64,000 bases of DNA from NCBI RefSeq assembly GCF_001194135.2, contig NC_068984.1, forward strand, positions 31,338,172 through 31,402,171. The letters run 5' to 3'. Positions within the stretch are counted from its first letter, which is position 1. Every line of letters begins with the position of its first letter. The notes below the pieces were generated by a model that worked only from the letters and a program-made list of their open reading frames with translations, ran no database searches and was not told where the DNA came from. Both the position numbers and the translations under genes were made by a program. This DNA is from Octopus bimaculoides (Eukaryota). Shown one piece after another: positions 12,201 through 64,000 of this stretch.

Positions 12201-12420
12201 TATTTATATATCTATACATACATACATACATATATATTTATATATCTATACATACATACATACATATATATATATTTATATATCTATACATACATACATA
12301 CATATATATATATTTATATATCTATACATACATACATACATATATATATATTTATATATCTATACATACATACATATATATATATTTATATATCTATACA
12401 TACATATATATATATATATC
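11400..12420. repeat. AT-rich minisatellite of 30-36-bp units (ATATATATTTATATATCTATACATACATAC) spanning an assembly gap (N 11746-12153)
   Basis: The tandem unit is visible on both sides of the N run. Confidence 0.9.
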
Positions 12421-12743
12421 AGTGTTGCCTTACTGGCACTTGTGCTGGTGGCACGTGAACAAGACATTCGAGTGCCGCTGGACTGACTCCTCTGCAGGTG
12501 ACATGTAAAAAAACACTATCTGAGCATGGTTGTTGCCAGTACCGCCAGACTGGCCCTCGTGCAGGTGGCACGTAGAAGCACCCACTACACTCTTGGAGTG
12601 GTTGGTGTTAGGAAGGGCATCCAGCTGTAGAAACTCTGCCAGATCAGATTGGAGCCTAGTGCAGCCATCTGGTTTGCCAGTCCTCAGTCAAATCATCCAA
12701 CCCATGCTAGCATGGAAAGCAGACGTTAAATGATGATGATGAT
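12421..12743 (+). mobile_element. RTE-type 3' end retroposon with (GAT)n tail
   Basis: Same body as 1-235; ends AGACGTTAAATGATGATGATG. Confidence 0.85.
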
Positions 12744-16183: not shown

Positions 16184-16854
16184 ATTTCTTTACCGAATCG
16201 TTACTGGCGACGGAAAATGATGCCTGTACATCAATATGAAGCAGTGTAAGAAATGGCTTAGCCCTGGTAAACAAGTGACACCGCGCATGAAACAAGACCT
16301 ACATCCGCGTAAAATAATGTTGTGCGTATGGTGGGACTGGGAAGGGATTATCCATTACGAATTGCTTGAACAGAACCAAACAGTCACCGCGGAACTCTAT
16401 GTTCAACAAATGGAACGACTCAGCATGGCTATTCAAGAGAAAAGACCTAATCATCAGCACGGAGTTCTTCTGCTGCACCACAACGCCCGCCCTCATATCG
16501 CCAGTATGACCAAGGAAGCCATTCAAACGCATGCCTGGGAAGTGCTGCCACACCCACCTTATTCCCCTGATTTGGCACCAACGGATTTCCACCTCTTTCG
16601 ATCTCTTTCAAATGTTATGCGCGGTGTTTCGTTCAATACTGATGCAGAAATGAGAGCTTGGCTGGATCAATTTTTCTAGTCGAAATCGGGTGATATCTAC
16701 CAAACGAGGTATTGAAAATCTTGTTGAATGTTGGGAAGAAGTTGTAAACAACAAGGGTGAATACATTATTGATCAATTAGTTGTTATTTTCTTTATTAAA
16801 CCTTTTTAAAAAATTAACTTAAAAAATACGACAGGAACTTAGTTGCCAACCTAA
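16184..16854 (+). mobile_element. Mariner transposon, 3' half with right TIR
   Basis: Transposase text ...KIMLCVWWDWEGIIHYELL...HHNARPH...HPPYSPDLAPTDFHLFRSL. TIR GGAACTTAGTTGCCAACCTAA followed by TA (16855-16856). Same family as 38870. Confidence 0.92.
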
Positions 16855-18140: not shown

Positions 18141-18449
18141 TATAGTACATGTATGCTGGATTCCTACATATATCTATATAGTCCTTTATCCCATGCATAC
18201 ACTTAACAAGCAATGCACATTTCTGATAGTTTACACTCCATTTGAAGGTGTTAGTGTTTATTTCATATTCTTGATGTGGTTAGATATAACACGTGAGGTT
18301 CTTAGATGTAGAGACAGTAACAGCACATACACTCAGACATGCATGTGTATTATCCTCCCTTTCCTCCTCATTGTCATCAGTGGCATCATCGTCATTATTT
18401 TATATCTACTTTCTCTGTTGGTATGATTTGAGTATGTTTGCAATATCGT

Positions 18450-19215
18450 TGTTGGTAACTAAGGGCCTCTCCTTCAGAGTGAAAGGCAGATTATATGATG
18501 CCTGTGCATACACAACCATGTTACAAAGTGAAATATGGGCTTTGACTACAGAGGACTTGCAAAGGCTTGAAAGAAATGAAGCTAGCATGCTCTGCTGAAT
18601 GGGTAATGTCAGTGTGTATGCAGGACAGAGTGGAAACGATTTAAGAGGAAAACTGGGTATAAGAGACATCAGATGTTGGTTGCAAGAGAGAAGATTGCAC
18701 TGGTTTGGTTATATGATGGGGACAGCTCATCACATGGATGAGGACAGCTGTGTAAAGAAGTGCCAAGCTGTAATTGTGGAGGATACCCGTGAAAGGGTAG
18801 ACCCAAGAAGACATGGGATGAAGTGGTGAGAATGGATCTTCAAATGCTGGGCCTCACTGAGGAAATGACAAAGGACCAGAAGATGTGGCAATTTGCTGTA
18901 CTTAATAAAGACACGTCAAGCTAAGTAAAATTACTGTCTTCCACACATACAGGCTTGTCCTTTCAGGTACCAGAGCTATTTAAAAAGCGCCCATGCTGAT
19001 GCTGCAGTAATGCACCTGTGTTGGTGCAGTGTAAACACACCCGTGCCTGCGCAGTGTAAACACACCCATGCCTGTGCTGTGTGAATGAACCTATGCTGGT
19101 GGCATGTAAAAGCACACAGTACACTTAAGTGACTGGCGTTAGGAAGGAATCTAGCCATAGAGACCATGCCACAACAGACAGAGTCTGGATAGCTTCCTGC
19201 TAGACAGCTCCATGA
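18450..19215 (+). mobile_element. 5'-truncated RTE-clade LINE (ORF C-terminus plus repeat-containing 3' UTR)
   Basis: LLVTKGLSFRVKGRLYDAC...SEIWALTTEDLQRLERNEASML matches the RTE post-RT region. The UTR carries GCAGTGTAAACACACCC repeats and GGCGTTAGGAAGG. Confidence 0.8.
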
Positions 19216-20450: not shown

Positions 20451-22047
20451 TTAAAAGTTTGGGATATACATTCCACTGAGAGAAACAAGTTGGATAATTC
20501 ATTAATTGCTTTGAGAGTTACTTCAAACCAATCTTTCAGAAATTTAGACTGGAATTCATCAGTTCATGAGATTTTGCTAAATTTTAGTTGGTTAAATTTC
20601 TGCTCGTTTTCTTCTGGAAGGAAGGTAATATATTTGGTAATAGACTATCATCTCACAGTGAAATATGTGCTTCAATGAGGAAAAAAAAAAAAAAAGAACT
20701 ATTACAATATTGAACCCAGCATTTATGATTGTCAATGTGGTCAGGGAGATTTTGACATGATTCCTTCTCTATGCTTAGCCAAACGTGTGTTTGTTAAGAG
20801 TGAGGATGGATAGAAAAAATTGTGGTTCACATAAACAAAGATGGTGAAAAAAACATTGCAGATTAGTCTAACTTCAACACATGAATTCCATTAAACCTTA
20901 CCAATAGGCACAGGGACAAATTGATAGTTGTGAGGACTGCAAATTTTCAGATAAACAAAATGTAATATTTGCATGTCTTTTTAAATATGTGGGGGAGCGT
21001 GCATGAGTGCATGCATGCACATGCATGTATGTATGTGTGCATGCCTTTGTTTGTATTTGTGTGGGTCTGTGTGTGTGTCTGTGTTTTCATTTGCAAGAGA
21101 AGAAAATGCAGGCAATAAGTAGAGTTTGTACTTTCTGTTAGAATCTCAGTTTTATGCTGATTGCTTGAACAGCTGATGAATGGAAGCAGTAACATATCTT
21201 CTTAATGAAATATGATTACTTGAATTTTGATTAATTACGGCTATTTAATTGTTATAAACAGAATACCTGAATATATTCTCCAATGCACATTATTTAATCT
21301 TCTATATTAGATGTTTAGAAAACAGAAAATTAACTTGTTTATGTAGAGTTGCAGTTCCTAAAAACAATGATATTTTTTATCTGTGGGGAACAATATTTCA
21401 GTACATGGTGAATTTATTTTGAGGAAAGTAAACTCTTTTACATAGATGGTATTTAGGAAATTCTTGATAAATGTCTTTTTTGCATATGCAAAGATTCCTC
21501 AATAAGCACATCTAGATTATCCTTCAAGGAAGAATTCTTTGGGTATTCTGCTCATTATGATAATGACAGCTTAAACACTGGCTTCAAAGGCAGAATATAT
21601 CATATACAGAAAAAAACCTTTATGCTAAAACGCACAAAAACCTGAAAACAAAACATTATAATCCTTCATCATGTTTAAATGCCCAATCAGGAATTTTTTT
21701 AACCCTTATAGATAAACATTTTGACACAGAAAATAGGACCTCCAATAAAAATAATAGCAATAAGGGGAGCTTTTAGCAGCAAAATCTTTGTTTCTTTCAT
21801 AACTACCATAAACAAATGAAAAGTGTTTAGTATAGACATGTAAAACTCTTCTTTGTATACTTGCAACAACCCAGATGTCTGGTCTTTCATAAGTGTATGT
21901 CGTTCTAAAGCATTAGTTTATTGATTAGAAACAAACTGTGACATAGGGCTTATTGAAAATCCATTATAAAAAGATTCCTCCAACATTTATACATATTCAG
22001 ACCTCTAGAACCCAAATATATATACAGAAAAAAAGTATATATACATG

Positions 22048-22383
22048 CGTCGCCTTCCTGGCACTTGTGCCAGTGGCATGTGTAAAGACATTCGAGCGAG
22101 ATCGTTGCCAGTGCCGCTGGACTGGCTCCTGTGCAGGTGGCACATAAAATACACCATTTTGAGCATGATCATTGCCAGTACCGCCTGACTGGCTTTTGTG
22201 CTGGTGGCACGTAAAAGTACCCGCTACACTCTCGGAGTGGTTGGCGTTAGGAAGGGCATCCAATTGTAGAAACTGTGCCAAATCAGATTGGAGCCTGGTG
22301 TAGCCATCTGGTTCACCAGTCCTCAGTCAAATTGTCCAACCCATGCTAGCATGGAAAGCAGACGTTAAACGATGATGATGATG
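22048..22383 (+). mobile_element. RTE-type 3' end retroposon with (GAT)n tail, within TA-rich sequence
   Basis: Same body as 1-235 and 12421-12743. Confidence 0.88.
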
Positions 22384-24825
22384 ATATATATATATATATA
22401 TATATGCATATATATTGACAATTATAAAATATTTTAGTCCATTTAAGAACACACCAACATTAATAGCTCTAGAATATATGATCTGTGTCTCTGAAAATCG
22501 TAAGCACTGTTTTCCAAACATTTGTAGTTTTAAACAGAAGATAACCGGTGATTACTTGTAGCATTTTGATCAGTATTTATTAAGGAGTTACTAATGATCA
22601 AATGATTCAAATAATGAATTTGGCAAACTCTTAAAGATTGTCACATACTGAGCACTATGACTACATAACTAATCGCCATCTCTCCAATTTCTTCCTAAAA
22701 ATTAGAACACAAAACACATTATTATATATTTGTGTGTATGGATATGTGTTTGGTATTAGATATTATCAGCATCTGTCTGACACAGAAACAAAAGAATACT
22801 TCGTTTCTGTGCTCTTCTAAGGAAACAGAAAACAAAACTGTGTCACTTTCCTTGTCAAGATACTTTTATCTGCAGGCAAAGTACAAAAAAATACTGCATT
22901 ACTTTCAAGATCATTTGATAATAGTTGTTAAATGTGAAAGTATTTATAGAACAGAGTTGTGATGCATAATGGTGCCTCAGGTGTAGGTATGTATGCATAT
23001 ATATATATATGTATATACATATAACCATATACATATATTCATATACATACATATATACACTCATGTATACCTTTTAACATTTTTACATACATACACACAT
23101 GGATACACTCACAAATACACGTGTGAGAAAATGTTTACTTAATTAGTGACATGCTGTCAAATACCACTACACGATGTGTCAACAGGCATCATCACTTACA
23201 AAAATAGTCAATGTCTACAAACAAAACAAAGATAGCTTTGCTGTAGATGAAGAGGAACCAATGTAGATGCGTTATGAATATATTCTGCAGCATTTGATAG
23301 TCACTTTCTTATATTTACCCATCAAGAATTTTGATGAGATGTGTGTGTGTGTGTGATATTTTAGTAGCTGTAGTATAAGCAAATCTATACAGTCCCTCAA
23401 GAGCATGCTGCATACTTCATCTGACAAGTGTAATGCTTATTTATTCACATTGCTTTGAATTAAACAAGCATTGTTTTGTAGTCTCAAGATTTCAATGATG
23501 TGATTGTCTATTTTTACAATGATGGTAGATATAAAATGCAAGATCTGGTGTGTCTTTAAGTGAGAAAAAAAGCGATCATTTTAAGGAATCAAAATATTCT
23601 TTATCATTTTTAGATATTTAGCATTATAAATGACAGCATCTGGTATTCTAGGTTATTTATCTAAATGGTACAGAGTGCCTAGTCAGAGATTGGGAGGCAC
23701 GATTTCGATACTTTGTAGGAGCTAACTGGCCATCCCCCACTTCCTGTTTTCTAGGGTGATTTAGCCAAAATGCTATGCTGTTTTTACAGCTATTTTGCAT
23801 TCGATATTTACTTCAGATGAAAGAGATCTATAAGAAGAATTTTAGGGTGAACAACTTGTCAAAATACATTAACTACAAAAAACCCTTGGATGACTTTAAG
23901 TGACAATAAAAGGTGATAATTTTAAGAAATCAAAATACTTTTGTCTTTTTAAGAGAAAACTAATATTGTATAAACTCAAATGAAAGAGTTCATCAAGATG
24001 AATGTTTTGGAGAAAACCCCATCTAAAAATTTTAAGCATAAAAATAATATTATGATTTTTTTGTGATTTCATATTAGATTTTATTATTCTGTTCATGTAT
24101 TAAAATATGTACATAATGCATATTAAAAACATGTCAAAATAAAATATTCCCCTCATTCAAAAACTAATTAGGAATTATTTGATGAGAATATGACATCATT
24201 TTCTAATAAAAAATTGTTTAAAAATCTATTTATTTGTAACAAATATGCTGTTATTAATCCTTTGTTACTTTTAGATGCAACCAAAACTTCTAAGTTTGAA
24301 CAAAATCTGCATTTAAAAGATATTTAGAATTGTGTCATTCTTTCTATTATACAGGTTAATTTAATTAATTATAATAATAAGAGCATTGCCTTGAAAAAAA
24401 AAGGGGTATTGGAATGAAATGTGTGGGTGCAGAATCCTAGAATATTCTTAAGTATTGAACAAGTTGTAATTAAGCCTGGAAAAGTACAAGACAAGAAGAA
24501 AAAAAATCTTTGTTGTTGAAGTTAGAATTTGCTAAATAAATTTCTGAAATTGTTCATCAAATAGTGTGTAAAATGGCTGATCGTTAGTAAGGAAAGACAC
24601 ACAAATTGGAAAGAAGAAAGCAAAGGACCACTGATTAGGTCACAGAAGTGTGACGAAAGAACTCTGACCGAAATACGATCAAGGTAATGTAAAATAAAGC
24701 TGAAGCAAATTAACACCAAATATATAGTGTATGTGTTTTTATTGGCCAAACTGGCAACATGACCATCCCCAAATACAACAATATCTGTTTTAACACACGA
24801 TTTCACACCAAGAATCTTACAAAAC

Positions 24826-35924: not shown

Positions 35925-36262
35925 TAATGGCACCGACTGGCAGAACCGTTTGCATGCCAGGTAACATGTTTAGTGGCATTTCATCTGTCTTTACACTCTA
36001 AGTTGGAATTCCACCAAAGTCAACTTTGCCTTTCATCCTTTCGGGGTCAATAAAATAAGTACCAGCTGAGCTCTGCCAAATTAGACTGGAGCCTGGTGTT
36101 GCCATCCGGTTTCACCAGTCCTCAGTCAAATCGTCCAACCCATGCTAGCATGGAAAGCGGACGTTAAACGACGATGATGATGATGATGATGAGCTCCAGG
36201 GTCGATGTAATCGACTGATTGCCTCCCCCAAATTGCTGGCTTCGTGCCAAAATTTGAAACCA
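35925..36262 (+). mobile_element. tRNA-SINE (3301 family) interrupted by a nested RTE-tail insertion
   Basis: The SINE halves join seamlessly at TGAGCT when 36073-36195 is removed. Confidence 0.85.
36073..36189 (+). mobile_element. Short 5'-truncated RTE-type retrocopy with (GAT)n tail
   Basis: TSD TGAGCT at 36067-36072 and 36190-36195. Near-identical to 116-235. Confidence 0.92.
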
Positions 36263-46412: not shown

Positions 46413-47775
46413 CTAGCAGAAATACCCGGCGTTGCCCGGGTTAAAGAGAATAATGAAATCTAAAAACGCCGTCTAGACTACGCATCATCTTTATATATAG
46501 AGATGTATATACACACACGCACCCAAACACACGTATATATATGTATCAATATAAATATATGAAAGTCAATGAAGTTTCGTAAAAGAAGGTGATCATGTAC
46601 ATACTTTCTTGCTGTTTTGATTATAACACCTCATTGTAAACTATGTTCCTTGTTTTCCCTTGTGGAGCATATACAAATAGGTTTTTTGTTGCTACCCACT
46701 CTTGAGCAGCCAACATACAGTTGTCCATGTGAGAAGNNNNNNNNNNNNNNNNNNNNNNNNNNNNNNNNNNNNNNNNNNNNNNNNNNNNNNNNNNNNNNNN
46801 NNNNNNNNNNNNNNNNNNNNNNNNNNNNNNNNNNNNNNNNNNNNNNNNNNNNNNNNNNNNNNNNNNNNNNNNNNNNNNNNNNNNNNNNNNNNNNNNNNNN
46901 NNNNNNNNNNNNNNNNNNNNNNNNNNNNNNNNNNNNNNNNNNNNNNNNNNNNNNNNNNNNNNNNNNNNNNNNNNNNNNNNNNNNNNNNNNNNNNNNNNNN
47001 NNNNNNNNNNNNNNNNNNNNNNNNNNNNNNNNNNNNNNNNNNNNNNNNNNNNNNNNNNNNNNNNNNNNNNNNNNNNNNNNNNNNNNNNNNNNNNNNNNNN
47101 NNNNNNNNNNNNNNNNNNNNNNNNNNNNNNNNNNNNNNNNNNNNNNNNNNNNNNNNNNNNNNNNNNNNNNNNNNNNNNNNNNNNNNNNNNNNNNNNNNNN
47201 NNNNNNNNNNNNNNNNNNNNNNNNNNNNNNNNNNNNNNNNNNNNNNNNNNNNNNNNNNNNNNNNNNNNNNNNNNNNNNNNNNNNNNNNNNNNNNNNNNNN
47301 NNNNNNNNNNNNNNNNNNNNNNNNNNNNNNNNNNNNNNNNNNNNNNNNNNNNNNNNNNNNNNNNNNNNNNNNNNNNNNNNNNNNNNNNNNNNNNNNNNNN
47401 NNNNNNNNNNNNNNNNNNNNNNNNNNNNNNNNNNNNNNNNNNNNNNNNNNNNNNNNNNNNNNNNNNNNNATCGAAATGTGATTGTTTCAGTTAGTGGAAT
47501 AGTTTCATTTTTAAAGTGAAAGTATTTGACATGAGTGTTTTTGTTTCACTTTTGACACGTAATACTTAAATAGTGGAGGAGATATTATGTTGCCGTGTGC
47601 TCGAACTCTGCAAGAAGTTAATAATTTTTTTGACTAAAACACAACTGGAACCCTAAGTAAGGCATGTGTAAAATTTGAATGAAATTGGTTGCGTAGTTCT
47701 CGAGTTTTAGGGATTCACACAGGCAGACAGACAGACAGACAGACAGACACACATTCTCATTTTTATATATATAGA
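46413..47775 (-). mobile_element. Helitron spanning an assembly gap (N 46737-47469), retaining the RepHel helicase C-terminus
   Basis: Minus strand: 5' A|TCTATATATATAAAAA...(GTCT)n at 47775; 3' hairpin CCCGG-GCAACG-CCGGG then CTAG|T at 46413. 46736-46621 reads FSHGQLYVGCSRVGS, then after a 1-nt frameshift KNLFVYAPQGKTRNIVYNEVL*. Confidence 0.88.
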
Positions 47776-49690: not shown

Positions 49691-51726
49691 TAATAGAAAT
49701 TGGTCTCATCGCCCCCCCCCCCTTCTTTTTTTGCTTTGTGGAGGAGCGGGAGTCGAATTTTTTTGTGTGAAGCCGCCATTGTTGGGTGGGGGTGAATAAC
49801 CGAGAAAAATGAGAAGCTATGCAGAAGCTACTGGAAAACGAGTTCCCCTAGACCCACGTGTACTGAAAAGGAGATGTTACAGTGGAATGGAGAGCTGATA
49901 CAGAAATATAGTAGAATGGTGAAGAAGGAAGGGTCAAATATAAAAATGACCTTACCAGAGGAGGAAAAAGTGAAAATGGAAAGGAAGACAGTCAGATTCA
50001 GAACACTTTCGAATAAAAATAGAAGAAATGAACAAGCGCCGCAGGAAGAAATAGAAAATTTGGAAGAACAGATAGGAGACAACATAACGTTCTTTATGAG
50101 AGGAAAGAGATATGCGTCGATAGTGGTAACCTTTGTATCAGAAGAGGAGGCGGAAAAAACCTTCATCAAGCTGATACAGGGAGAAAAATGGACTTTGATC
50201 CTAAACTGTGTGGACACAAGAATTTTCAGAATTAGGGTGGGAAGAATCCCACCGTCGATAGATCCAGAGTGTATAATAGTCGCAATTTTTTATTCGGAGA
50301 TGAGGAAGGAAAGCGAAGATGTGAGGATGGGCATGACAAGTCGAACCCAACAAGTGAAGTGTGGGGCTACGGATTAGAGATAATTTGTGCAGTGAAACCT
50401 GAAACTTTAAAGCTACCGAATGAAGGAAAACAAGAGGGGAGACCCCCCCCCCCACAAGTGTTACGAATGTGGTGAAAGAGAGCACTTGAGAAAGAAATAC
50501 CCTAGAGCAGCAGTGGAAATGGTAGAGGAGAGTATTCAGGAGAATATAGTGGTAGAGAAACAGCAGAAAGAGAAAACAGAACATGACGGGAACCTTGCGG
50601 GAACCTATTGTTGAACGTCATTGTTAAATTTTTGAATTATTAACTGCTGCTTTTGTGAAATATATTCTGTTTGCTTCCCCATTTATAGGTGAAGTAGAGC
50701 AAAAAGGAACTATGGAGAGTGAACCAGTTCCAGCCGGTAGCTATGCTTCAGCCACTGGAAGAAGTTTGACGGCTGAGCAATCCAAGTCAGTTTGCCATAT
50801 CTACATAATATAGCAGAAGAGGTGAAACTGTCAGAAGACGTGAATTTTAGAGTAGTGGTGGAGGGATTACTTCCAACCTGCTATCATTGTAGAGTACGGG
50901 GACACATGAAAGCAAAGTGTCTCCAGAAACACGACAAAGTTGTAGCGAAACAAGAGGAGCAGGAGCATAACGCCGAAGCGACAAACCCAGGATTTGAGAA
51001 ATGTCCTGTGAATGTGGAGGAGCAGTACACGATGGTGAATAGATAGAAGAGAGAAAATGTGGACTCACCACCAAAGAGTCCACTAAAGAAAAGAAAGGAA
51101 AGTAAAGAAGCACAATATGAGACCAACAACATCGAAGGGGGCCCAACGCAGAAAAACAGGAGGGACTACAGTAACAAACATATAAAAAAAAAACGAAACA
51201 CAAATGGCATATGGTAACGTATGCGAAAAGTGTAGAGATAGAGAAGAACATCACAAAAAGAAAAACAGTAATAAGAGTGAAATTAACGTCGGAATACTAC
51301 CCAGAAAGCTCTAAAGCAATTCTAATTGATAGTGAGATGTGAAAAATTACGAGAACTGTTCGGGGATAAGATAGAGACAACGGGAGTACGCGATCGTTTC
51401 GACGATTTGCCACCAGTGGTAGAGTTCGAAGATCTGTTGCCGTATATAGAATGATAAAAAGGAAAAAGTAAGCAAAATTTTTTTTTAATTGTTAATGATA
51501 GTAAAAACAGAAGCAAAAGGAAAAGAACCGATTCATAAACGTTTAACGAAAAACATTTAAATGATACTGTCTGCGAGTGGGGAGCAGGAAGGCCATTTCA
51601 TTCTCATTGTTATAATCAATCCTTCATTCGTTCGTTCTGTGTTTTATGTTCCCAATGTGGTGTGCTGACCCCTCTATGTATGAGCCTGAGTGCTTAATAA
51701 AAGAAATCCTAATAGAAATTGGTCTC
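49691..51726 (+). mobile_element. ORF1-only L1/Tx1-like element (HAL1-like), decayed, bounded by a 17-bp direct repeat
   Basis: TAATAGAAATTGGTCTC at 49691-49707 and 51710-51726. ORF from 49809 (MRSYAEATGK..., frameshifts) with an RRM-like segment. Zinc knuckles EGRPP..KCYECGEREHLRKKY and VVVEGLLPTCYHCRVRGHMKAKC. AATAAA at 51696. No EN or RT recognised. Confidence 0.6.
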
Positions 51727-59485: not shown

Positions 59486-60425
59486 TTAGTCCAAGGACTG
59501 CAGTAATGCTGGGGCACTGTCGTTTACATTGCTACACTCTCACTATACCTCCTCTGATGTATGACATTTGGTGGATGAGAGAGTTTGACATTACTGTCCC
59601 CATGTGCGTTTGTTGCTTTGACGCAGGTTCATCCGGGATTCTTGACAGGAGGAGGTCCAGTTTTTCTTCGTAAAAGTCTATATCCACGACATGCAGATCT
59701 CTCAGACTCTGTGGGAAGATATTGAAGAATTGTGGGCCTTTCAAGCCCAAGCTGTTGCGGTTCTGTATCCTGACGGTAAGGTTGGGACTTTTGGTACTCT
59801 GCAGTGGCTGTTTATGTAACTGACAATGCCAGTTTGGCACAAGTTTTTCTAGGATTTTCCAAATTTGTATTACTGCATATCTTTCCTGCCTTCGCTCCAC
59901 AGAGTAGAGTCTTAACTCTTTCAGTCTCTCCCAGTCGCTAATATGTCGCATTGTGTCGATCTTTGTGTAGCTTCGCTGGATCACCTCGAGTTCCGTCGTT
60001 AATTTTACACTGTTTGGTGACCACAATTGGGAGCAGTAAACCAGGCGGCTGAAAACGAAAGTACTCCAGAGGACCATCATGGTTTCCTTTCCTCGTGTTT
60101 TGAAAGATCGAAGGATCCATCTGAGGAAGTGTCTGCATTTTATTGCCATCTTGGTAATGTTCACCTAGAAAGCTGCATCATTACTCGTGTCGATGCCCAT
60201 GTCATTCACTGATTTTGATTCAGGGATTGCAATCCCTCCTGGGCCACTGTATCCTATCTGCTTTTCATTAAACTTATTTTGTTTGTAGCGCAGGGCTTGG
60301 AATTTTCCAACATTAAACTGCATGTTATTTTCCTTAGCTCACCTGCATATTGCGTCCAACTCACGTTGTAGATGCACAAGGTCTCCAAGGTTCTGTATCT
60401 TCTGAGAGACTTTTGTATCATCTTC
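59486..60425 (-). pseudogene. 5'-truncated CR1-group (CR1/L2/Crack-like) LINE: RT C-terminus to 3' end
   Basis: TKVSQKIQ...LQRELDAICR*AKENNMQFNVGKF; WILRSFKTR...SRLVYCSQLWSP...WERLKELRLYSVERRQERY...WKILEKLVPN. Confidence 0.85.
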
Positions 60426-60458: not shown

Positions 60459-61449
60459 AGGCATGTCAGAAGCATGTGAGAAACGGTTTTAAAAATTCTG
60501 TTCAGGAGATCTTTCATTCAATGCTGATCAACGTGCTGGTCGACCTATTGAAGTTGATGGTGACCGAATCAAAGCTATGATTGAATCTGACTCCAACTAT
60601 GCGAGAGATTGCAGAGAGGTGAAATGTATTACACTCAATAATTAAAAATTACTTAAAATGTCTTGGACTCGTTAAGAAGCTCGATGTTTGGGTTCCACAT
60701 AAATTGAAAGAGATTCAAGTAACACAACGAATCAATATTTGTGATATGCATCTCAAACGCAATGAAATCGACCATATTTTTTTAAACGAATTATCAGTAG
60801 CAAAAACAAAAAATGGATTACCTACAATAATATCAATCGTAAACGATCATGGTCCAAGCGAAATGAATCATCACAAACCATATCGAAAGATGAATTGCAT
60901 CAAAAAAGGTCATTCTATCAATTTGGTGGAATCACAAAGGTGTTGTGTATTTTGAGTTGCTTCCAAGGAACCAAATGATCGATTCAGGTGTTTACTGGCA
61001 AGAACTAATGAAACTAGAGGAAGCAATCAAAGATAAACGTCCAGAAATGGCAAATCGTAAAGGAATTGTGTTCCACCATGGCAACGCTAGACCACACACG
61101 TCTTTGCAATCACACGAAAAATTTTTGGAGCTTGTTTAGGAAGTGATGTCACAGCCACCATATATCCCTGAACTTGCACCATCAGATTACCATTTATTTC
61201 GAAGTTTTCAAAATTCTTTGAATAGCAAAACTTTTAATAATGATGATGACCTGAAATCGCACTTGCTTCAGATTTGGGCTGATATGAACCAGAAGTTCTA
61301 TGAGCGCAGAATCATGAAATTGCCAGAAATATGGCAAGAGTTCACCAAACAAAATGGAAAATATATATAACTGATTAAAGTTAATTTTCGTTGTGTGAAT
61401 AAAAAACTTTTACTTCACACTAAAAAACTGAAATTACTTTCTTGCCCAC
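60459..61449 (+). mobile_element. Mariner (mellifera-subfamily-like) relic lacking the 5' end
   Basis: LDVWVPHKLKEIQVTQRINICDMHLKRNEID; YFELLPRNQMI...KRPEMANRKGIVFHHGNARPH; QPPYIPELAPSDYHLFRSFQNSLN. A partial right TIR runs into a CA repeat. Confidence 0.92.
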
Positions 61450-62729
61450 ACACACGCACACGCACACGCACACGCACACGCGCGTGTGTGAGTGTTTGTG
61501 TATGTATGTGTCCCCGAGAGAATAAAACAGGAGATTCCGTTAAAATATTTTACAATGACATAAATTCTATTACCTTTACACATATTTCTCTAACATATAC
61601 TAATATGCCATGCAGTAATCATCTCAGGCGGTTGTGTAATCAGTTTAGAGCGCCAGATCATCAGAAGAATTAATTTATTCCATTGTTGGTTACCAACGTC
61701 GGTTAGGAGACAGAAACATACTGAGAACTGCATGCATATTTAGTAGATTATTCTGTATATATACATTCAAAGAAAAAAAGGTATTTCATTAATTTTACAG
61801 AGTACGCCTTTCACAAACAATTGAAATTATGAAAGTTGTTTTTTTTTTGGGAAGCGGGGACCAACATAATATTCCGTGCTTAAAAGTCAGAAATTAAAAG
61901 AAAGCAAAATAAAATATTAAAAAAATCGAGAATTGGGTAAGGTCTGGGGAAAACTCGAGTTTGGAAAATAAAATAAGAAATGGCAGATTCATAATCTCTA
62001 ATGATTAAAACATGTCAATCCGAAGAAATTTTCTCAAAGAATCTTTAAAAGTTACGCTATGCTAATGCTAGCCACCACGTCATACATTTTCGTTATTTTT
62101 TTTCTGCTAACAACTTCATGACAGACCGTCTTCCTTTTTTCCCTTTGTGACAACTTCATTCCACAGCAACGGAATTCACATACATGAAATATTATTTCCC
62201 TCTCTTTGTATGTACGTAACTTTACTTCACTATCTCTCTTTCTCTATCATCTACATGACTACTTTCCTTTTCAGAGAGAAAAAGAGGGAGAGAGAGATTA
62301 AAAAAGTGTCTGAAGAAGGAAGAAAAATCGAGAGTTGAAAATTATACAAAATTTTATGCACATTATCATTATGTATTTAAGAAAATTTCTTTATCTCATA
62401 CAGCTTTTCAATCCTTTTGATTCTTTTTGTTACCTACTATTATTCCCTTTTCTGTCTCCTATGTCATTACGAAGTCTATTGGCTTATATTATTTAATGCA
62501 CTTTTTCATTTTTAATGTGGTAGGGTCTGATCTGAGAGATTTAGCTTCATCAGATTTCATTTTCAGTGTTTGATTCATGTGTGATGAAAATATTGGGGAG
62601 GATTTGGAAAAACGGAATAAAGTTAGATTGCAGGTTTATGTATTTCACAGCTATAATGATAGGAAATGAAGGTAAATGGCACAAACGTTTTAGTATTATA
62701 GCAAAAACCACCATGTTGTTTTAAAGAAC

Positions 62730-63015
62730 ATCATCATCATCGTCGTTTAACGTCCGCTTTCCATGCTAGCATGGGTTGGACGATTTGACTGAGGCGTGGT
62801 GGACCAGGAGACGACACCAGGCTCCAATCTGATTTGGCAGAGTTTCTACAGCTGGATGCCCTTCTTAACGCCAACCACTCCGAGAGTGTAGTGGGTGCTT
62901 TTACGTGCCACCGGCACGATGGCCAGTCGGGCGGTACTGGCGACGGCCACGCTCGAAATGGTGTATTTTACGTGCCACCTGCACAGGATCCAGTCCATCG
63001 GCACTGGCAATGATC
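62730..63015 (-). mobile_element. RTE-type 3' end with (GAT)n tail, forming the 3' half of a U6 chimera
   Basis: The reverse complement matches the 22048 copy from GATC(A/G)TTGCCAGTGCCG through GGACGTTAAACGACGATGATG. Confidence 0.9.
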
Positions 63016-63112
63016 AAAAATATGGAACGCTTTACGAATATGCGTGTCAATCCTTGCGCAGGGACCATGCTAATTTTCTCTGTATTGTTCCAATTTTAGT
63101 ATATGTATTGCC
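63016..63112 (-). pseudogene. RNU6: U6 snRNA retropseudogene fused to an RTE tail
   Basis: Minus strand GGCAATACATATACTAAAATTGGAACAATACAGAGAAAATTAGCATGGTCCCTGCGCAAGGATTGACACGCATATTCGTAAAGCGTTCCATATTTTT. This is metazoan U6 from about nt 12 to the 3' end, with about 8 differences from the human sequence as I recall it. The ACAGAGA box and AGC triad are intact. Confidence 0.95.
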
Positions 63113-63711
63113 TATCTTAAGATAATAAAGAACTTTGAACCTGTGGTTTCATTTCAAAGATAGACATGTGTATTGCTCCCAGTCTCTGTATGTTTCACCA
63201 TCATCATAATGACCTCTATTTCCTAGAGTCTCAATTTCTCTCCACTAATGCACTTCTGGCTCACATTCAACTTACTTGTCTATTCTCATCAACAATGTTG
63301 TTCCTATAACCCTCCTAAACCTCCCATTAACTACCATGGTCAATCCTTCCTCCACAGAATGTTAGACAACAGGAATATCCTTCCTACAAATGTTACATTG
63401 CAACTGTCTAAGCAGAACGTAAATGGCATCAGTTTCTCTTAGAGGGTTTTATGTGAACTACCTTTCCCTTCAGATCCAGAAAGAAAAAAAAATGTAGGGA
63501 ATTTATTGCAGTGAGATTTGGCCAGAACACTTCAACAACTCAACCAACTTTATTTCAATTTTCTTGTTACCATGGATATAAAATTGATTTGAAACACAAT
63601 CTGAAAGAATATAGATTTGCTTTGTTTGAATATTCACATCAAAGTAGGATACATTCACTGAAAAATTAGGATACTGTGAGATTCATGCCTTTCTTTAAAG
63701 AAATATTTACA

Positions 63712-63871
63712 GATGCAGGAGTTGTTGTGGTAAGTAGCTTGCTTACCAACCACACGATTCCAGGCTCAGTCCTACTACGTGGCACCTTAGGCAAGTATCT
63801 TTTACTATAGCCTTGGGTCAACTAAAGTCTTGTGGGTAGATTTGGTAGACAGAAACTAAAAGAAGCCCATC

Positions 63872-63905
<34 letters not shown>

Positions 63906-64000
63906 CTGTGTTTACGTCCCCATAAGTTAGCAGTTTAGCAAAAGAGACTCGTAGAATAAGTACTAGGTTTACAAAGAATAAGTCCTGGGGTTGATTTGCT
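63712..64000 (+). mobile_element. CORE-like tRNA-derived SINE, cut by the window end
   Basis: tRNA-like head, GGCACCTTAGGCAAGTATCT block, internal TA/TG microsatellite, AGAATAAGTACTAGG...CCTGGGGTTGATTTGCT. Confidence 0.85.

Follow-up and report, generated by a model that had tools for sequence, protein, structure and literature searches.

Chimeric pseudogenes in which the U6 spliceosomal RNA is joined to the 3' end of a retroelement have been described in mammals, where U6 is followed by an oligo-T run, the 5'-truncated 3' end of an L1 element and a tail, the whole being flanked by a target-site duplication (TSD) (Buzdin 2002; Garcia-Perez 2007; Moldovan 2019, PMC6789731). Beyond mammalian L1, Doucet et al. 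2015 (PMC4476161) reported U6 chimeras in the lizard Anolis with RTEX-2, L2 and L1 long interspersed elements (LINEs) and with AnolisSINE2, and in the platypus with L2 and Mon-1 (40 chimeras with TSDs of 1-9 bp), as well as opossum cases with RTE_Mdo and RTESINE1 that showed no obvious TSD and from which the authors drew no conclusion. U6 chimera formation was concluded in that work to be a general property of retrotransposons without long terminal repeats (non-LTR retrotransposons). Here we analyze a locus of this kind in 64,000 nucleotides of Octopus bimaculoides DNA (NCBI RefSeq assembly GCF_001194135.2, contig NC_068984.1, positions 31,338,172 to 31,402,171 of the forward strand), referred to below as the window, whose first letter is position 1 in all coordinates. 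On its minus strand, a U6 copy is fused to the 3' part of a retroposon resembling a short interspersed element (SINE), and the resulting unit is most probably a processed chimeric pseudogene produced by one retrotransposition of a U6-SINE composite template. The locus belongs to the U6/retroposon chimeric pseudogene class of the Buzdin and Doucet type and represents its first example in a mollusc. Since chimeras of this kind were already known from vertebrates, the novelty is limited to the new phylum, and the non-L1, RTE-type partner that an earlier note on this DNA had offered as the novel point had already been published for vertebrates (PMC4476161). A full-text literature search, a limited negative given its partial journal coverage, found U6 chimeras reported neither for molluscs nor for any other invertebrate group.

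Comparison with the vertebrate non-L1 chimeras (PMC4476161) reveals shared features that include a sense-oriented U6 to which the 3' part of a "stringent" LINE-dependent retroposon is directly attached, a simple-repeat tail instead of poly(A), short TSDs and the possibility of a SINE as partner. The differences are that the host here is a cephalopod mollusc, that the partner SINE family is octopus-specific and that one locus was seen, as opposed to 3-40 per genome in vertebrates; moreover, the octopus U6 is near full-length, in contrast to the platypus copies, nearly all of which are truncated at the 5' end. Mammalian U6/L1 chimeras (PMC6789731) likewise show no junction microhomology and carry U6 3' ends of 4-5 U, while the octopus locus departs from them in its non-L1 machinery, its (GAT)n tail in place of poly(A) and its TSD of 8 bp compared with the usual ~15 bp.

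Read along the minus strand, the locus has the order GTTCTTTA / TTATCTTAAGATA / GGCAATACATATACTAAAATTGG...CGTTCCATATTTTT / GATCATTGCCAGTGCC...GGACGTTAAACGAC(GAT)4 / GTTCTTTA, with caaa and aaac as outer flanks. The first block is the upstream TSD copy (63126-63133, without strand), which reads TAAAGAAC on the plus strand and GTTCTTTA on the element strand and is an exact 8-mer match to the downstream copy at 62722-62729. It is followed by a 13-nt segment, TTATCTTAAGATA (63113-63125, minus), which separates the TSD from recognizable U6, and then by the U6 snRNA-derived module (63016-63112, minus), which covers U6 positions ~12-107 according to blastn. The SINE-like retroposon body (62745-63015, minus), delimited by blastn and MAFFT, lacks the first ~52 nt of the full-length element and runs into the tail GAC(GAT)4 (62730-62744, minus), the presumed priming site for target-primed reverse transcription (TPRT). 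The composite unit is bracketed at both outer ends by a perfect 8-bp direct repeat, TAAAGAAC, and because the final G of the tail overlaps the last base of the downstream copy, the length of the TSD is 7-8 bp.

The identity of the U6 module was established by an Rfam match to RF00026 at 63123-63016 (minus), which spans the full model (positions 1-105), has a score of 89.2 bits (gathering score 44) at E 1.7e-21 and is the only Rfam family matched in the window. By blastn, canonical U6 positions 12-107 align to 63112-63016 with 91.8% identity over 97 nt, the ACAGAGA box and the AGC triad are kept, and the module ends in exactly five T in the sense orientation (UUUUU, 63020-63016), all of which bears out the earlier report of a near-full U6 on the minus strand. 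Judging from these alignments, the module is a full or near-full-length copy. It is nevertheless a pseudogene and not a gene: it carries a 1-nt T insertion in GGATTGACAC (GGAuUGACAC) and several substitutions at conserved positions, and reading of the sequence ~30 nt upstream of U6 found no TATA-like element.

No nucleotide separates the oligo-T of U6 from the SINE part, which has the orientation of U6, and the 286 nt that follow (63015 to 62730) align without gaps, end to end, to the 3' part of another copy in the window (22100-22385) at 89.2% identity. The same 286 nt also align by blastn to 12471-12743, 1-228 and 36071-36185, and the SINE body could be aligned to copies from O. vulgaris as well. 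No microhomology is present at the junction, where the reference copy reads GCGA|GATC (22096-22103) and the chimera reads TTTTT|GATC. The direct joining of U6 to the 3' 286 nt of the window's repeat and its (GAT)n tail, the absence of microhomology and the exact 8-bp repeat had each been proposed beforehand from reading the sequence, and each was reproduced here. The first base of the SINE part (GATC...) is precisely that with which the element's second internal unit, of ~67 nt, opens, a phase that coincides with the one in which full-length copies start, as GCGTCGCC and CAGTGTTGCC align with GATCGTTGCC (n = 2 full-length copies). From these two copies, the unit-phased start may indicate that the reverse transcriptase (RT) reached a genuine RNA 5' end, either of a two-unit variant or of a unit-phased cleavage product, instead of stalling at random.

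The chance rate of the flanking repeat was calculated from 200,000 random position pairs drawn from the window. An 8-mer repeat arises by chance at 1.4e-4 at the exact positions and at 7.6e-3 (0.8% of trials) with slack of +-2 and +-20 nt. The TSD brackets the composite and not its single modules, and no repeat flanks the SINE part alone, with ATATTTTT upstream of it and TTCTTTAA downstream of its tail. A comparable repeat of ~7 bp is present around the 5'-truncated solo copy at 36071-36185. Divergence from canonical U6 is ~8% for the U6 part, and the SINE part differs by ~9% from a rough consensus built on the remaining window copies (91% identity), similar values that are consistent with one age for both modules. 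The nearest N-run (46737-47469) lies ~15 kb from the chimera, and no assembly gap is closer.

The outer TSD, the lack of a repeat around the SINE alone, the equal decay of the modules, the absence of a nearby gap and the repeat on the solo copy make a single insertion the best reading, in agreement with the claim of the earlier note that the unit was inserted in one event, which is further strengthened by the direct junction, the common orientation and the natural oligo-T end. We regard it as very improbable that the locus instead reflects two independent events, in which a 5'-truncated SINE landed at the T-run of a U6 pseudogene, or an assembly artefact, with the 8-bp repeat being fortuitous. 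Independent insertion would yield exact, same-orientation abutment with a prior of ~4e-5, as estimated from copy density, and the placement of the repeat around the composite, a SINE part without a TSD of its own, the equal divergence of both modules and a span of 15 kb without a gap all speak against such an origin. What speaks for it is that SINE copies are dense, at about one per 4-13 kb, that the assembly is gapped and of short-read style with three N-runs in the window, and that the repeat recurs at the above rate when positional slack is allowed.

Formation of the chimera by a single retrotransposition could have proceeded as follows, with TPRT by a LINE partner as the process that we infer. 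The RT of the LINE that mobilizes this octopus SINE family, probably RTE-like, would have primed on the (GAU)n tail of the SINE RNA at a nick in the target TAAAGAAC, after which 286 nt of SINE RNA would have been copied up to an RNA 5' end corresponding to an internal unit boundary. The RT would then have continued into U6 from its natural oligo-U 3' end, by a template switch or on RNAs already ligated through the RtcB route of U6/L1 formation, and would have copied U6 to, or almost to, its 5' end. Second-strand processing would have left the ~13 odd nucleotides at the 5' junction together with the 8-bp TSD, and the insertion has since decayed by ~8-9% and has no function. Both routes for joining the two RNAs have precedents. 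For L2, RTE and SINE partners, a LINE RT has been proposed to switch templates, passing from the retroposon RNA onto the 3' end of U6 (PMC4476161). Ligation by RtcB of the U6 2',3'-cyclic-phosphate end to L1 or other RNAs before reverse transcription has been shown for human U6/L1, and the involvement of RtcB for human L1 only (PMC6789731). The five terminal T and the absence of microhomology fit template switching and RtcB ligation alike, and one locus cannot separate them.

Several observations weigh against a single U6-SINE retrotransposition and temper the confidence placed in it. The evidence comes from one locus, and a search of very low power turned up no further independent chimera with another junction. 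The TSD is short in a window rich in AT and in simple repeats, and the RTE-like LINE taken to have driven the event is a putative one. In addition, the TSD does not abut a clean U6, as the 13 nt at 63125-63113 fit the canonical U6 5' stem-loop poorly and are placed by Rfam on U6 model positions 1-12 only with non-canonical stem pairs. This segment, TTATCTTAAGATA, could be a decayed U6 5' stem-loop, filler at the 5' junction or a U6 5' end particular to this species. Within it, 12 nt form a perfect palindrome, TATCTTAAGATA (63113-63124), located where the U6 5' stem-loop is expected and unique in the window; by shuffling, the palindrome is not significant. An origin of the 13 nt by snap-back copying of U6, or by copying of the target site, was also considered, but neither fits convincingly.

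Analysis of the partner led to a revision of its classification. The earlier note had taken it for an RTE-type LINE, whereas the copies in the window define a non-coding element of ~325-340 bp that comprises three tandem units of ~52-67 nt, each with GGTGGCACGTAAAA, followed by a unique 3' region and a tail of the form ...CATGCTAGCATGGAAAGCGGACGTTAAACGA(TGA)n. The reference full-length copy (22047-22385, plus, 339 bp) has the three internal units and a (GAT)5 tail; a second full-length copy (12420-12743, plus, 324 bp) starts at the corresponding point to within a few nucleotides, and both sit within an AT microsatellite. No open reading frame (ORF) adjoins the element at any of its five copies in the window, ARAGORN found no tRNA in the window, and Rfam at relaxed thresholds detected no tRNA, 5S or 7SL head on 22000-22420. 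Given the absence of an ORF and of a tRNA, 5S or 7SL head, the partner is a SINE-like non-autonomous element, non-coding and with an unclassified head. In the copy at 12420-12743, a deletion of 15-17 nt (about CGAGATCGTTGCCAG) lies at the boundary of units 1 and 2, where the chimera junction also falls, and could be the mark of a subfamily or a point prone to breakage.

The family is abundant in octopuses: five copies lie in the 64-kb window, three 20-kb loci of O. vulgaris (60 kb) yield 16 tail-bearing matches, and all copies in the window and in O. vulgaris share the end ...GGACGTTAAACGA(TGA)n. An annotation of the O. vulgaris genome (2026; PMC13282606) assigns 11.7% of the genome to SINEs, nearly all of them "Unclassified SINE," and a partner that lacks a head derived from a small RNA fits this dominant class. 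A look-up of SINE sequence strings in the full-text literature found none. Half of the O. vulgaris tail-bearing matches (8/16) lie in SINE-derived arrays of L042. At L042:3682-4496 (OX597840.1), the 3' 137 nt of the SINE, tail included, form a 5.9-copy tandem array at 97% identity, so that the terminus and tail of the SINE have been turned into a satellite. A second array, at L002:16163-16933 (OX597839.1), repeats the ~62-nt internal unit of the SINE 12.4 times with 94% matches beside a SINE 3' end and is a SINE-derived minisatellite. At the protein level, reverse-strand translations of the SINE match annotated proteins of O. bimaculoides (P0007, 98%; P0002) and of O. vulgaris (P0006, P0008 and P0028). 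The three O. vulgaris entries, listed as "hypothetical predicted proteins," are essentially SINE ORFs, and a WD40 protein and a C2H2 protein of O. bimaculoides carry SINE-derived termini. The SINE sequence in annotated Octopus proteins reflects either annotation artefacts or exonization.

A probable relative of the autonomous side of this system was found in the window as a 5'-truncated LINE fragment (18430-19215, plus), composed of a C-terminal ORF (...RRLHWFGYMMG...GMKW*; 18430-18826) and a 3' untranslated region (UTR) of ~390 nt; the fragment carries an in-frame TGA. Its 3' UTR holds units of the GGCA(C/T)GTAAA type, as does the SINE, and one segment is 75-79% identical to the SINE body over ~57-100 nt. 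By this similarity, the SINE body is related to a LINE 3' UTR of the same genome. The common unit architecture suggests that it derives from such a 3' UTR, and the fragment is a relative of the SINE's likely autonomous partner. This LINE copy is without the SINE terminus and without the (GAT)n tail. A protein search with the LINE C-terminus gave a single homologue (P0121, 62% identity). A 651-nt ENA contig from that search was followed as a route to the LINE parent and set aside, since its 3' side enters unrelated GC-rich sequence.

The proposed link to RTE elements is indirect. It passes through the 75-79% identity between the LINE 3' UTR and ~90-100 nt of the SINE body, and Pfam searches of the LINE fragments gave no match and no clade-informative domain. 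RTE is plausible as the autonomous partner: it is the most abundant LINE superfamily in O. vulgaris (PMC13282606), and microsatellite tails are typical of RTEs (PMC9115989). L2 and CR1 elements likewise end in simple repeats (PMC4476161).

The chimera may also be viewed in the light of snRNA-headed SINEs such as SINEU of crocodilians (Kojima 2015, PMC4494074). Like the octopus locus, SINEU combines an snRNA 5' module with a retroposon 3' module, and template switching is thought to be its origin; in contrast to the single U6-headed copy seen here, its heads are U1 and U2 and it forms amplified families with diagnostic lesions. Retrocopies of comparable build are also known outside mammals from Magnaporthe, where template jumps of a LINE RT give bipartite and tripartite chimeric retrogenes (Gogvadze 2007, PMC2104539). 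That host is a fungus and the RNAs differ, one component reported there being a highly expressed non-coding RNA of unknown function and not U6.

Following the SINEU precedent, the locus could be one copy of an amplified U6-headed SINE family, in which a founding chimera gave rise, as master copy, to descendants with one and the same junction, an alternative that the earlier note had raised and that we consider unlikely. The existence of snRNA-headed SINEs (PMC4494074) lends it some credence, and the position of the junction exactly at an internal unit boundary, in phase with the normal 5' end, would suit a defined element. The O. vulgaris annotation moreover lists, without comment, a "SINE/U" family (369,490 bp, 19 recent insertions) and a "SINE/U-L1" family (PMC13282606), although "SINE/U" insertions average ~730 bp as against the 400-bp unit observed here, and both families may be snRNA gene repeats. 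Since animal U6 promoters lie upstream of the gene (PMC4494074), a U6 head would bring no promoter with it, which argues weakly against amplification. A narrower version, in which octopuses have a SINE lineage with a U6 head and the locus belongs to it or is its fossil founder, perhaps matching the O. vulgaris "SINE/U," is slightly more doubtful still. According to Kojima (PMC4494074), an snRNA-headed family is told from a set of independent chimeras by lesions and junctions common to its members and by master copies, criteria that call for many copies.

Searches for further copies, all of negligible power with respect to a 2.7-Gb genome, were carried out at the DNA and protein levels. No second U6 was detected in the ~124 kb of Octopus DNA scanned, namely the 64-kb window and the 60 kb of O. 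vulgaris, which is a weak negative. The junction-spanning ORF of the window yielded no candidate among 5.8 billion proteins, and phmmer with the 77-aa junction ORF against 1.84 billion representatives gave matches to the SINE or to U6 and none to both. A designed ORF that joined a reverse-frame SINE consensus to canonical U6 returned 702 protein matches, in which the SINE half pointed to O. bimaculoides and O. vulgaris proteins and the U6 half to U6 ORFs of many eukaryotes; 0/702 joined the two halves. That no match in protein space joins the SINE and U6 parts also speaks, weakly, against a U6-headed family. None of ten window ORFs was present in an exact look-up in the protein collection, which hence provided no anchor for the orthologous locus, nor does the window contain an annotated gene that could serve as one. 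Neither the SINE tail nor the junction turned up in scans of viral contigs. A pattern of the U6 3' end followed by the SINE start retrieved 38 metagenome loci, many on human-gut contigs, in which blastn finds neither U6 nor SINE; these were rejected as chance matches.

As a single decayed locus, the probable U6-SINE retrotransposition described here has no functional importance; it is mainly of use as a clear illustration of such a chimera and as a starting point for scanning the whole genome. If confirmed genome-wide, it would extend U6-retroposon chimera formation from vertebrates to lophotrochozoans and would suggest that the joining of U6 and retroposon RNAs, by template switch or ligation, is a general non-LTR property and not specific to L1 or to vertebrates. 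A census of such chimeras could show how SINE heads are captured in octopuses, where SINEs make up ~12% of the genome and most heads are of unknown origin. Were the U6-headed lineage real, it would constitute the first SINE with a U6 head and a case in which a stringent RTE-like LINE/SINE system generates new heads by capturing snRNAs.

The surroundings of the chimera contain remnants of other mobile elements. Two mariner-type transposase remnants were identified at 16221-16676 (plus) and 60894-61367 (plus) by Pfam Transposase_1 (E 2e-25 and 7e-17), the latter ~1.4 kb away from the chimera. The C-terminal part of another LINE ORF (...FVFSRLVYCSQLWSP...) lies at 59535-60338 (minus), has no Pfam match and is unrelated to the SINE tail. 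At 49796-51043 (plus), a series of open frames whose motifs resemble CCHC zinc knuckles (CYECGEREH, CYHCRVRGH) has the look of a gag-like retroelement remnant; in the one frame of this region that was submitted to Pfam (49796-50374), no match was obtained. The end of the window (63715-64000) is occupied by another high-copy repeat, distinct from the partner SINE, of which the three O. vulgaris loci contain over 10 copies (69-84% identity).

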